Below are positions 20,621 to 37,392 of a stretch of DNA of 64,000 nt, in pieces. The notes under the pieces are model-generated. The model saw only the letters and a list, made by a program, of their open reading frames with translations, was not told the DNA's origin and searched no databases. Made by a program: the position numbers and the translations under genes. Origin of the DNA: Oculina patagonica (Eukaryota); the NCBI RefSeq assembly GCF_052425735.1, contig NC_135760.1, forward strand, positions 26,102,001 through 26,166,000, in the 5' to 3' direction. Each line of letters starts with the position of its first letter. Position 1 is the first letter of the stretch.

Positions 20621-23255
20621 TCAGAAGTCGTCTTCAGTGAAACCTTCGTCTGCTTCTTTGATGGCACGACTTACGGTGTCATTTATTTCTTTTATTCTTG
20701 CTGGATCTTCAGGAGGAAGCACTTTTAGTAGCTCTGTTTCGATCTGCTTGATTCTCTTCTCCACTTTGTGGTGGAAGTGTTCTTTGGCTTCCATCACAAG
20801 CTTCCTTATAGCTTCTTGAGCCTCTTGGCTGCCTTCCATGAGCTCTGTCTTCTTCATCTCAATGGTGTGTCTTTCCTTCTCCGGATCCAAGGCGACCAAC
20901 TGGCCAAGACTCGCCAGGCGGCTCATCAGGTGGTTGCGGGATATTTCCACGTACGTGTTGGATATGGACCACACCACATACGACGTCGTATTTGCTTGGC
21001 TCACTTGCTCATAGATGAGATCGCGCATGAAATCACCATCAGCATAGCCGTTAGCCAGCACTCGCCTTTGGCCCACCTTGGCATAGTCGACAAAACTTTT
21101 TAGGCTTTCATTTTGACAAACCTTGATGATGTTGGTGATAAACTGGAAGAACTCCACCAGTTTCTGCCACTGCTCACGAACTGAGGCCAGGGCTTTGATG
21201 CCTTTCATCAGGGTGTCTCTTATTTGGTCGAAGTTAGCAATCTTCTCTGGGCTCAATTCGGCAAGGCTTTCTAACACCTTACTTAACTCTTCATTGTTCT
21301 CCTTTAGTTGCTTGCAAGTCTGATCGTAGCGGTCCTCTTGCCTTTCTAATAGGCCCCTTGTTTCAGCGATTTTGAACCGTGCACCTTCAACTGCTGTCTT
21401 AGCTGCACTTTTAGAGGTAGAACTTTGAGATCTGGCCATGTTTGCTTGCCTTGGAGATTTGGTAGTGAAAGGATTTCCTCCTGTCTTTGCACGAATTTTT
21501 GTGCACAACTTCATGACGTCATTCTTTAGTTCAGCTGCTTGTGTAGCAATTCCTTTGAGGTTCTCAGGTGAAAAGGTCAGCCCCTTCGTTATTGCTTCCC
21601 CTTCCTTGCTTATCTCCAAACCTTTTTTCAGAAGCTCTTGGACCTCTTTGTCTATTGGACCCCCTTTTTGGCCAGTCAAATCTTCCTGTAAGATTTCCAT
21701 ATATACCTTCATCGACTGAAGCTTTTTGTCCAACGGTTCTTCAGCACTGCTGGAGCCACTGTCGCCTTTAGCTTTTACAGAAGCAGAGTTAAGGTCTTCT
21801 GACAACTGAGTAGTGAGAAGCTTCAATTGCTCTCCAGCTTCTTTAAATTTTGGCACTGGGCCGGGAATTGGAGACTGCTCAATACCAGCTTCCTCCCCCG
21901 AATCTGCTGCTGCTGCCGCCGCAGAACCGGCGATAGATGCAAAAGGGTTTTTTGCAACTTTTGCGATGTCAACGACGCCATGTACGATTGTTTCAACAAC
22001 TTCCATGCCCAGGACATCCCATCCACTTGGCATAGAATCTACAGCCTTCTCCCAGCTTCTTTTCGCTTCTCGTACTTCCTTTTCTAGTTTTTCTTGCTGT
22101 TCTTTCGCCAAAGCCATCTTCTCGCGGGCTGCCTTTTCTTTAGCTAGGGCAATTTCTCGTCTCAGTTTTACTTCCTCTTGAGTTTTTTCATAATGTCCCC
22201 TGGCAGCTGAAGAAGCTTCCAATAGCTCGCCCGTCAGATCCATCACGTGCTCGAACTTTGCTTCAACTGATTGTGCCAAGCGCAAACATTCCGCAGAATT
22301 CCTCTCAATCTTTCCAAGTTCTATTGGAAGGAAGTCTTTGACATCCTCATCACTTCCCCTGACCAGAGTACGGACAACTTTCTTCACTTGATCTGGTACT
22401 TGAGCAGAATACAGTCGAATTGCATCCATGTTCTTGGAAAGAAAAAAATAATCGAATTTAGGTTTCAAGTCAGTGGAAATCCCCTGCTGAATGCCTTTGT
22501 CTTTTTATCAGTTTTCCTCGATTGGCATGTGCATAGAAGGATACCAAAAAGTCACCGAAGTATACCATTTTAGCATCGAAGCCTAAGTTACTATATTATT
22601 AATCGTGTTTAACGTATATTCTTAGCCGCGAAGGCCACCTTATGCATGTATTCGGGTAAATGGTCGTTTTAAATTTTATTGCACCCTAAAACTTATCAAA
22701 TATATGCGCAAGCCAGCGGAATACAAAAACAGTAAACGACCAATCGACCAACTGACCGAGCAAGCGAAATACACCGTTTTACTCGCGTTCATTGCCGCTC
22801 ATTAATGCGTTGTTTAAAGACTTAAAACTGTCATTAGAATAGGGCTCCAAATAATAGAAATTGTGAAAACACCAAAAACGTTTTAAATCACCCCAGGAAT
22901 GTTCTATCTTGCATTTTTTGTAAGCCTTTAGCGTTCTTACCTTGTGGGCTTCATTGAAAGCTCTCCATCCAGTATTGCTTACTTGCACCAAACATGCTCG
23001 AAATGATTCGGGATGTTTTATAAATTGGAAACCTTTCTCGGGCCTCTGCTGTTCCAGTGTGAAGTCCTTTTCCCCAGCAATCAGCAACAGGTGTCCCAGA
23101 AGGGCGATAGTCATGGGTGCAGGAGTCAGAAACTCTGCCCAGTTCACCTCGGGTGACATCATCAGCAAGGCCATCTCATTCTTGTCATTTCCTGAGTTGG
23201 AGCTTATCATCGCTTTGTTAAGATCTGCTACCATAGTGTCACTTGGTTCAGACAT
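20621..23255 (-). CDS. Uncharacterised ~708-aa alpha-helical coiled-coil protein with a central hydrophobic/amphipathic segment; putative large subunit of an alpha-pore-forming-like pair
   Basis: complement(join(20621..22432,22941..23255)); phase-0 GT-AG intron joins AFNEAHK|NMDAIRL. A splice acceptor at 23265-23266 just upstream of the ATG implies a 5'UTR intron. Long heptad-rich helices and the segment GWDVLGMEVVETIVHGVVDIAKVAKNPFASIAGSAAAAAA. The function call is inference. Confidence 0.85.
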
Positions 23256-23700
23256 GATTTTTCTCTGAAAATAAACAACCAACAAACAATAGTTTTATCG
23301 TTTATTTCCGCCCCGTGCTCCATAATGGATGTTCATAACGCATAATTTTAGGTGGGTTTTCGCCTTGCCATCCACATAACAACAGTCGAAAATATTACGC
23401 ACGCTTTCAGTGTTACGTGCATAGCGGATTTCTATCGACATCCATCTTTCGATGTGCTAAACAAACAAGACGGATCGAAATCCGCCAATCACAGCCCGCT
23501 AGAATGACCTTCTGAAATTGTCGGCTCTTTTGCATTAAACCAACATCGGTATGCAGCTGTTTTGATTGGCGCATTTCAAAAGAAAGACGATGTCGAAAGA
23601 TGGATGTAAAAAGATAGCTATGCACATAACACTGGAGCCGCGTCTGGAGGCGGGTGTAAAAAGGCGGCCCATAGTAGAGACAAGAAAACGGAGCCTTATC

Positions 23701-35399: not shown

Positions 35400-37392
35400 A
35401 TGACAAGTGCAGCAGTTGATGAACAAAAGATGTCACATGAAAGTCATGGTTAGTAAAGTGGTTAATGAAGGGCATCTTGAAGTTTATTCAGTTCTGATTC
35501 GTAAATTTTCCGTTGTGATACGTGGAGCCTGTATGTTCTCCCATTGTTTTCCATTCACTGAAATAATAATGAACTCCAATTTTCAAAGGGACAATTCTCT
35601 TTATTGCTGCCTTAAAAGTACATAAACTTGTAGGTTTTGGACTGCAATCCCCGAGGGTTTCTACTATAGGACAGTTTAACTACTCGCTGTCTGGCTACGG
35701 ATTTCTTTCAAAAACAAGTATCGGCCCACAGTTTCAACAACAACGACAACAACAAGGTTTATTTGAAACTGTAAACTTACAAGTAACAACTTAAACAATA
35801 AATAAATTAAAAATACATACAGTTTACATTCTTGTTTTGGGGGGGGGGGCACAGTTTCATTTAAAACATATCAAACTTTTGCATGCTCTTTCATTTTTAA
35901 TATCTACTTTTCTATTAGGTGAATTCCTAAATTGGAAACGAAGTAAATGACAAAAGATGAAAAAAAAAAACAGAGGACATAACGCAGATGTCACTTAATG
36001 GAGAAGGAAGAAAGAGCGGTGTACTGCGTGTACTTTAGGCATAAGTGGGCACCGCCGGAATTCATATCTCTGATCCTAATATTAACAATTAGGCCTTCCA
36101 ACAAATTTTCTCTTACACGTTTTACCAAACTTTGACCGTTTGCTGGCACCTCATTCGACCTTCGCACCCAAAACTTTGATATTTTCTTTCTAGACAAGGC
36201 AGGAATTCAAATGACTGGACAAACGACAGCGGTGATTGACAAATGATAAAATGTCATGACACAGTTAAATGACCTGAGTTACGGTTATATTCACGTTACA
36301 AAATGGGTGATCTGAAATGAAAGTTATAACGCCCACTCTGACGCTTATATTGCATCTTGTCAATTATTCTCCACAGATGTAAAGGTGAGGACGTCAGTCT
36401 CTCCACACTTTTGTAGTGGTTTACTGTCGTTAGAAAGTTTTGCCCAGATTGTGGATGAGACCCCACATGACATCAGTGTAGCAGCCGCTCGGCGAATGAT
36501 GCCTAACCTCCTCGGTCTTGTTAACGAGGCTCACGAAGCTTTCCAAACTGCTGAATCCAGAATACAAGAGATTAATGACAAGTTGGACAACGAGCTTGAG
36601 GATATTGTGGTACAGGAGAAAACCACAGATGACCGCCTTCGACAAACTCAAGAAGATTTAGCAAAACTAAAGGAAAGGGGAAAAGTACTACAAGATGAGA
36701 GCAATGGATTGAAGCGACAACTTGCCAATGACGAAGCAGATCATGGAAGGGAGAGAAAGTACTTTAAAGAGAAGAGAGCCAAACTTGAAGAGAAAAGAAA
36801 AAAACGCGGCCCCAAAACTGTACTGTATACCCTTGGTGGAGCACTTTTGGGTGGACCGGTCGGAGCTGCTGCTGCTAGTATAATAACAGCTGTAGCTCTA
36901 CAGAAGGATATCGATAATGCTGAAAAAGCAGACGACGAAGCCTGGACTCAGCTAATGCGCACCAAGGATAGGATCCGTGACAAAGGAACAGAACTTTCCA
37001 ACTTGTCGAATGAAAAAAAAAAGCTTAGAAAGAACCACACGACGAAAAGCAAGGAGATCAAAATGCTCAAGCTGCGCAAGACAGAAATAAAACATTCCCA
37101 GGCGCGATTAGCAAGATTGAATGTATCCATCAAAAGTTGTACAATGCTGGTTGGTACCACGACAACACGAGCAAACATGATGGCAGTCGAAGCAAATGGT
37201 GGGTTACCTGATATCGAAGCCATGATCTCTCCCTTGAAAGCAATTGCTGATGATCTCTCTGATGCGTCTCTAAGCAACAGCCGCCTGTTATCTGGGAATG
37301 TTGACATGAAAGGAATAGGATGTAAGATCCAAATGATAACTTCCAAAGCACTGAAAACCATCACACAAGGCGATATAGACGAATGGGCATGA
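35400..37392 (+). CDS. Uncharacterised ~354-aa coiled-coil protein with a Gly-rich hydrophobic hairpin, copy B (intact); putative small subunit of an alpha-pore-forming-like pair
   Basis: join(35400..35448,36377..37392); 1065 nt in frame, with an in-frame TAA just upstream of the ATG. MTSAAVDEQKMSHESH|DVKVRTS... long helix, TVLYTLGGALLGGPVGAAAASIITAVAL, long helix ...DIDEWA. Confidence 0.85.

Follow-up and report, generated by a model that had tools for sequence, protein, structure and literature searches.

An ancient two-component module of unrelated helical proteins, possibly membrane-active, in the coral Oculina patagonica and distant relatives

The stretch of DNA analyzed here, 64,000 nucleotides from the coral Oculina patagonica (NCBI RefSeq assembly GCF_052425735.1, contig NC_135760.1, positions 26,102,001 to 26,166,000; hereafter the window, numbered from its first letter), carries a large gene, L, on the reverse strand and a small gene, S, on the forward strand, with a broken second copy of S lying between them (Table 1). 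An earlier reading made from the letters alone (the sequence-only reading) had placed here a large helical protein facing away from smaller ones on the opposite strand, and this arrangement was indeed present, L being 708 residues long. Together, S and L constitute an uncharacterized, ancient two-component module whose parts are sometimes fused into a single protein, and the feature is real and more than a product of chance.

The two exons of L were joined into a stop-free protein. The splice was supported by P0056, a transcript-sized relative of 708 residues that was 96% identical through the junction: 101 of the 105 residues of exon 1 corresponded to its N-terminus, and exon 2 was 96% identical to its residues 105–708. 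The junction and the N-terminus were also common to many full-length coral relatives. Spliced S was 354 residues long and matched P0001 and the NCBI model LOC144647269 isoform X2 (O. patagonica) exactly; the 335-residue open reading frame (ORF) at 36385–37392 had 100% identity to the NCBI entry “uncharacterized protein LOC144647269 isoform X2”. The duplication of the small gene, also part of the sequence-only reading, was real, with 83% nucleotide identity between the copies over about 1.3 kb of coding part (blastn), but only one copy is intact. The other carries at least two frameshifts, and its NCBI models, P0017 and P0028, omit its middle. The second of the two hairpin motifs quoted in that reading had been read across one of the frameshift breaks.

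Table 1. Genes and features of the S–L locus and its flanks, in window coordinates.
Feature	Position	Strand	Description
Large gene L, exon 1	23255-22941	-	105 codons; ATG at 23255; GT donor after 22941; from ORF and splice reading
Large gene L, exon 2	22432-20621	-	603 codons and stop; helical body, variable low-complexity linker, conserved C-terminal helical region
L residues 42-61 (exon 1)	23073-23132	-	20 residues without charge; no other part of L is strongly hydrophobic
Broken second copy of the small gene	29645-31410	+	body split over three reading frames; found by ORFs and nucleotide comparison
Intact small gene S, exon 1	35400-35448	+	16 codons and 1 base; GT donor
Intact small gene S, exon 2	36377-37392	+	rest of the 354-residue protein and stop
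S residues 164-192	36817-36903	+	uncharged Gly/Ala-rich tip; candidate membrane-inserting hairpin (from the model)
Duplicated block with the broken copy	29278-32420		paralogous to 35053-38322, which holds the intact copy; blastn of segment against segment
FMO-like monooxygenase exons, left flank	10792-14222	+	Pfam PF00743, E 5e-68 and 7e-82
Second FMO-like monooxygenase, right flank	43279-46723	+	Pfam PF00743, E 4e-77 and 2e-58

The AlphaFold2 model of S, built with 40 relatives in the alignment, had a mean predicted local distance difference test score (pLDDT) of 81.6 and formed an antiparallel hairpin of two helices of about 110 residues each. Helices were placed at residues 3–44, 51–159 and 179–290, followed by three or four short C-terminal ones, so that the arms would be roughly 160 Å long if the helices were straight. 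At the end far from the tip, the N-terminal helix and the short C-terminal helices were packed into a small bundle. The tip itself was a low-pLDDT loop between the long helices in this monomer, for which only the extended form was modelled. It coincides with the only uncharged stretch of S, 29 residues rich in Gly and Ala with a GGPVG turn; outside it, 32% of the residues were charged, and a basic patch lay between helix 51–159 and the Gly/Ala-rich segment. The succession of long helix, basic patch, hydrophobic Gly/Ala tip and return helix was thus as previously described from the translated letters, and was borne out by both the sequence and the model.

The tip was retained throughout the family. 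Among full-length relatives of S, 46 of the 51 from corals and 56 of the 64 remote ones had a central uncharged segment, with a median length of 28–29 residues (range 18–48) and a relative position of 0.49. In an alignment of 43 diverse members with a mean identity of 21%, the sole near-invariant column was a glycine of the tip. Judged from these alignments, the central uncharged segment is not there by chance; it is a hallmark of the family and the best conserved feature of S.

L was less tractable. For its AlphaFold2 model the full-length relative P0056 (96% identical) stood in, aligned with 40 relatives; the model was all-helical but poor, with a pLDDT of 56. The suggestion that L repeats the helix, hydrophobic segment, helix logic of S needs correction: the mid-protein “hydrophobic segment” at residues 244–262 was weak (Kyte-Doolittle 1.2, with charged residues inside), and only residues 42–61 were truly hydrophobic. 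The motif PAP..IA.LG.L of this N-terminal stretch recurred in P0216, P0231, P0288 and the L ORF of locus L008, its conservation being judged on those remote or fused relatives whose N-terminal region was read. The S and L profiles were unrelated to each other (hhalign probability 13%).

A Pfam search returned no domain in either window protein, neither family has a Pfam model, and neither protein has a hydrophobic N-terminus or signal peptide, in agreement with the earlier statement that enzyme motifs and signal peptides are lacking. Some relatives carry names such as “CAP-Gly domain-containing linker protein 1-like” (P0042, Montipora capricornis) and “chromosome partition protein Smc-like” (P0231, Tiliqua scincoides), which are coiled-coil artefacts. 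Domain searches detected no CAP-Gly domain in P0042 and no SMC domain in P0231; the automated names of S and L relatives mirror coiled-coil composition only.

An exhaustive search with the S profile yielded 104 clusters at 50% identity. Relatives of both proteins were numerous in scleractinians, the named hosts being Acropora, Montipora and Pocillopora for L and Montipora for S. Beyond corals, named S relatives came from Callorhinchus milii (elephant shark), Erpetoichthys calabaricus (reedfish), Esox lucius (pike), Paramormyrops kingsleyae (elephantfish) and Protopterus annectens (lungfish), and the match in the skink Tiliqua scincoides was the fused protein P0231. Matches in the zoosporic fungi Allomyces arbusculus and Borealophlyctis nickersoniae were weaker (E about 1e-4 to 1e-5) and kept the central hydrophobic segment. 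Relatives in fish and fungi, which the sequence-only reading had anticipated, were therefore recovered by the profile search, those of fungi with lower scores. On this distribution of sequences, the S–L module is ancient and patchily retained, and is not a coral novelty. Between Oculina and either Acropora or Montipora, L was about 65% identical, whereas S was 45–48% identical between Oculina and Montipora or similarly distant coral relatives, so that the description of the block as fast-evolving is at best partly borne out. One S relative, P0223 (382 residues, from a JGI contig of 1688 nt), carried an N-terminal beta-trefoil lectin domain of the ricin type (PF00652; score 31 bits, cut-off 29) ahead of its S part and was without a signal peptide. 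Searches of the literature by NCBI LOC gene identifier or by topic found no paper on either family.

The firmest result was genomic: the two families were repeatedly found side by side. S and L lay at most 10 kb apart in five of six contexts that could be read at the DNA level, including pairs in which the proteins were 19–33% identical to those of the window. The window itself has the order L(-), broken S(+), S(+). Close relatives of its proteins in another coral (L002/L003) were arranged as L(-) S(+) L(-), another S lying 43 kb off, and a more distant coral (L005, S 45% identical to window S) had S and a broken S followed by a convergent L. At greater distance, L007 showed the order L(-) S(+) S(+) broken-S(+), with L 33% and S 22% identical to their window counterparts. 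At L008, a single ORF of 689 residues on the reverse strand (E 6e-116 against the L profile) was accompanied by S on the forward strand, 19% identical to window S. In L006, S preceded L on the same strand with 2.4 kb between them (L 26%, S about 20% identical). Tandem S duplicates with decayed copies were seen in three genomes.

Three natural fusions joined the two families in a single ORF, in the order S then L in all three. In the skink protein P0231 (955 residues), residues 276–955 covered L over its full length in an alignment with 31% identity (E 3e-103). The L match of P0216 (1096 residues) had an hhalign probability of 100%, and P0288 (1371 residues) consisted of three fn3 domains (residues 1–300), then S, then L. 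Because the families adjoin in distant lineages and are naturally fused, S and L would be expected to work together; they are almost certainly functionally linked partners, two parts of one conserved system, as far as gene order and fusion can tell. The view of the two families as partners, already part of the sequence-only reading, is thereby upheld.

Adjacency was not universal. No L was found within 10 kb at the coral locus L004 or at the reedfish locus; two further L genes were present on the same contig as L004. The ORF list of the P0190 locus likewise held no L-sized ORF within 10 kb. A 607-residue ORF at the edge of L005, considered as an L gene, was ruled out by tblastn, and P0219, in which an S-like N-terminal half is followed by an unrelated, Pfam-negative tail of 400 residues, was put aside as a possible chimera. 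Several S genes had other neighbors: in L004 (18686–21038) S was bordered by reverse transcriptase and phage-integrase-like ORFs, and at the P0190 locus by B-family DNA polymerase and reverse transcriptase ORFs. In L006, fn3 ORFs at 5906–7248 lay upstream of S on the same strand and may be part of one fn3-S-L gene with introns.

Expression from a shared promoter, also proposed earlier, does not fit the distances in the window, where the start codons of L and the broken copy are separated by 6.4 kb and those of L and intact S by 12 kb. The head-to-head orientation of S and L did recur in L003, L007 and L008 with a spacing of 4–9 kb, and shared regulation is therefore possible.

The likeness of S to toxins of the ClyA type was recurrent but remained below threshold, and is only suggestive. 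In Foldseek searches, the window S model had no match in the PDB at E ≤ 1e-3. It did match AhlB pore and pre-pore chains (6grj, 6h2f) and the SmhB pore (7a0g) with E-values of 4e-3 to 2e-2 and template modelling (TM) scores of 0.43–0.57, and these chains were among the few matches spanning nearly the full length of both proteins. When 43 S relatives were scanned singly, ClyA-family models were matched by several of them: XaxA by eight (best E 2.6e-6), MakE by five and MakA by four (NCBIfam), and HlyE by two (Pfam). For P0190, P0196 and P0203, for which the matched ranges were listed, these were mostly long, colinear alignments of about 100–250 residues that took in both helices and the tip between them. 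When the profile of the S subgroup with long tips (A4) was searched against 177,635 PDB sequences, NheB (6tao) came at rank 8 (E 0.005) and MakE (6w08) at rank 11 (E 0.008). The tips of S relatives fell near the beta-tongue of MakE, residues 202–224, a position interpolated from the alignment bounds. The two relatives that matched HlyE found nothing in single-sequence PDB searches.

The sizes of known heads are compatible with that of the S tip. The AhlB pore protomer has two helices of 140 Å and a bilayer-spanning head, and AhlC-type (C) components have heads of 15 residues (PMC6602965), while the MakE head, 22 residues with its beta-tongue at 202–224, enters one leaflet only and that of MakA has 48 residues (PMC8617504). 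Published heads thus range from about 15–22 residues (one leaflet) to about 48 (bilayer), and the 29 residues of the window tip, within a family range of 18–48, are long enough for a head of this kind.

Several observations weigh against a ClyA-type interpretation. Window S and L themselves had no ClyA-family match among Pfam, NCBIfam or PDB sequences, where only coiled-coil noise was returned, and even with the S relatives included no match to the family reached a curated or conventional threshold. Remote S relatives scored 19–21 bits against HlyE (cut-off 25), 18–20 against XaxA (125), 19 against MakE (360), 16–17 against MakA (320) and 17 against NheB (500), and ClyA-type scores of 17–21 bits did not exceed the SMC/Rad50 coiled-coil noise from the same proteins. 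In the fold search, chemoreceptor, dynein-stalk and SMC coiled coils as well as Tc-toxin channels matched S equally well. The background is composition-biased toward coiled coils, and a similar architecture alone could yield such alignments. The helix order also differs, with two helices, the tip, then one long and several short helices in S as compared with three before the head and two after it in ClyA-type proteins, and the tail bundle of S is small. L had no recognizable likeness to a toxin component, and the broader L profile found in the PDB only designed helices and weak F-BAR matches (syndapin/PACSIN, E 0.002–0.13). Known binary ClyA-type toxins have subunits that are homologous to each other, which S and L are not, and L is well conserved between coral suborders, unlike many arms-race genes. 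Foldseek matches of L to SmhA, HblL1, Hbl-B and MakB (E 0.3–1.8, TM 0.1–0.2) were treated as meaningless given the pLDDT of the model. The ClyA-like fold earlier suggested for both proteins is thus only suggestive for S, where the likeness does not rise above that to generic coiled coils, and is not supported for L, whose model is too poor to judge by.

From the tip and the modelled hairpin, the S–L module would be expected to insert into a membrane. We tentatively regard S and L as a binary or tripartite permeabilizer or remodeller of membranes resembling ClyA-type systems, by analogy with these, and put its probability somewhat short of an even chance. ClyA-like action is plausible, whereas membership of the ClyA family is unproven. 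In such a system, the tip of S would dip into one leaflet and anchor the protein, as in the short-headed ClyA-type components MakE and AhlC, since it is too short for two full transmembrane helices. L would dock on S and add membrane-active parts, perhaps its N-terminal hydrophobic helix, and the assembly would then permeabilize or reshape the membrane in the manner of multi-component ClyA-type alpha-pore-formers. As neither protein has a signal peptide, they would approach the target membrane from within the cytosol or be released by an unconventional route beforehand. A role in defence or cell death is a guess, made because of the missing signal peptides, the tandem duplicates with decayed copies, the patchy distribution and the one lectin-fused relative. 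In its broadest form, the proposal would be of an ancient opisthokont binary pore-forming or cell-death system, structurally akin to ClyA and built of two unrelated subunits, in stony corals, cartilaginous and bony fishes, lungfish, a lizard (fused) and zoosporic fungi; we consider this unlikely.

As the main rival reading, the module might act on membranes without breaching them. S would then be a coiled-coil membrane resident anchored by its hairpin with both ends on one side, and L a cytosolic scaffold, the pair tethering, shaping or organizing a membrane without a pore, much as reticulon-type or caveolin-type hairpin proteins do with coiled-coil partners. A tip of the median length is more apt for a monotopic or re-entrant anchor than for a pair of segments crossing the bilayer. 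The arms, with their strong charge and heptad pattern, are coiled coils of a sort typical of structural proteins, whose families dominate every profile search, and an ancient family present in vertebrates, corals and apparently zoosporic fungi is what a cell-biological module would look like. The absence of signal peptides, the fair conservation of L and its weak F-BAR matches agree with such a role as well. On the other hand, the patchy hosts, the lack of a Pfam family, the decayed tandem copies in three genomes and the ricin-lectin fusion fit defence genes better than core machinery, and ClyA-family models recur among the few matches outside ordinary coiled-coil families. This non-lytic alternative is possible, although on balance we would not expect it to hold.

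More doubtful is that S belongs to the ClyA superfamily in the strict sense, as a highly diverged member through descent or ancient transfer and not as a mere analogue, and that the module is a eukaryotic branch of the binary or tripartite alpha-pore-forming toxins. Four independent sets of models converged on that superfamily (HlyE in Pfam; XaxA, MakE, MakA and NheB in NCBIfam; NheB and MakE in the PDB; AhlB and SmhB in Foldseek), and the interpolated position of the tips near the MakE beta-tongue and the multi-component gene organization point the same way. All these matches were, however, sub-threshold against a composition-biased background, and none of the profile matches belonged to the window protein. 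Helix-flanked hydrophobic tips would be aligned by architecture alone, the order of helices differs, and the partner L has no relationship to either S or a toxin subunit. It is very improbable that nothing functional is involved, that is, that two unrelated coiled-coil genes became neighbors by accident and that the hydrophobic middle of S is incidental. The generic coiled-coil look behind the automated names (“CAP-Gly linker protein 1-like”, “Smc-like”) and the L004 and reedfish loci without a nearby L would agree with an accident, but this is contradicted by the five-in-six adjacency, which extends to highly diverged pairs, by three independent-looking fusions, and by the tip being what S conserves best.

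Known animal pore-formers and executioners of cell death use other folds, namely MACPF/perforin, gasdermin, aerolysin-like, actinoporin, MLKL, NINJ1 and Bcl-2/colicin-like. To our knowledge, no ClyA-type two-component helical system native to animals has been described, and none came up in the literature searches. If the ClyA-like reading of S and L is true, they would be the first ClyA-like membrane-perforating machinery native to animals. Whatever their exact role, two uncharacterized families without Pfam models are linked, through synteny and gene fusion, in hosts ranging from corals to a reptile, the misleading automated names “Smc-like” and “CAP-Gly linker-like” are corrected, and a candidate membrane-active module is provided for coral immunology and vertebrate cell biology.

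The block stands among ordinary genes of metabolism and housekeeping, in line with the placement between housekeeping genes in the sequence-only reading. To the left and to the right of L-S-S there are FMO-like genes, as though the block had its place inside a tandem FMO pair, and exons of an FGGY kinase, DEPDC5/IML1 and an MRM3-like protein lie farther left in the window. At another coral locus (L001, 17622–21008), FMO-like ORFs were also present downstream of the S gene. Just 3' of the L stop codon (20286–20452), an 18-bp unit that is partly palindromic, GCTAGGGTAACCCTAGCA, is repeated in two short arrays. The DNA immediately following the broken S copy (31490–31790) is of low complexity with overlapping Pro/Arg/Gly-rich ORFs on both strands, beyond which a 129-bp tandem repeat occurs in 2.8 copies (32650–33013). 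A run of N at 57459–57613 marks an assembly gap or a masked stretch. Two arrays of a 37-bp satellite, at 60473–61675 and 62711–63845, comprise about 33 and 31 copies with 89–91% matches, and account for the right end of the window being strongly AT-skewed and rich in long ORFs that overlap.

Among known systems, Colicin Ia is a pore-forming protein that, like S, is built around a very long helical hairpin. It was the top PDB sequence match of profile A4 (1cii, E 3.8e-7), and no other profile found it. The match was confined to the coiled-coil arm (chain residues 348–441) and is probably compositional; S has no colicin channel domain. The glycine-zipper hairpins of C19orf12-like proteins (PF20721) resemble the tip of S in being short, Gly-rich and uncharged with small-xxx-small spacing. 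A few S relatives scored 14.5–19.6 bits against this model (cut-off 30), over the tip only, which is short of membership, and C19orf12 proteins lack both the coiled-coil arms of about 110 residues and an L partner. The ClyA family (AhlABC/SmhABC, MakABE, Nhe/Hbl, XaxAB/YaxAB, ClyA/HlyE) differs in having a five-helix tail where S has a small terminal bundle and charged two-helix coiled-coil arms. Its partner subunits are paralogous and share one fold, whereas L is unrelated to S or to toxin subunits and twice the size of a ClyA-type subunit, and the hosts of S and L are animals and fungi, with no signal peptides and with natural S–L fusions. Like the members of that family, S is nevertheless predicted to be an elongated, all-helical protein of about 350 residues, in which a hydrophobic tip is borne on a pair of very long antiparallel helices, as in the extended ClyA-type state, and, as in the multi-component toxins of the family, the genes of the partners S and L stand side by side.

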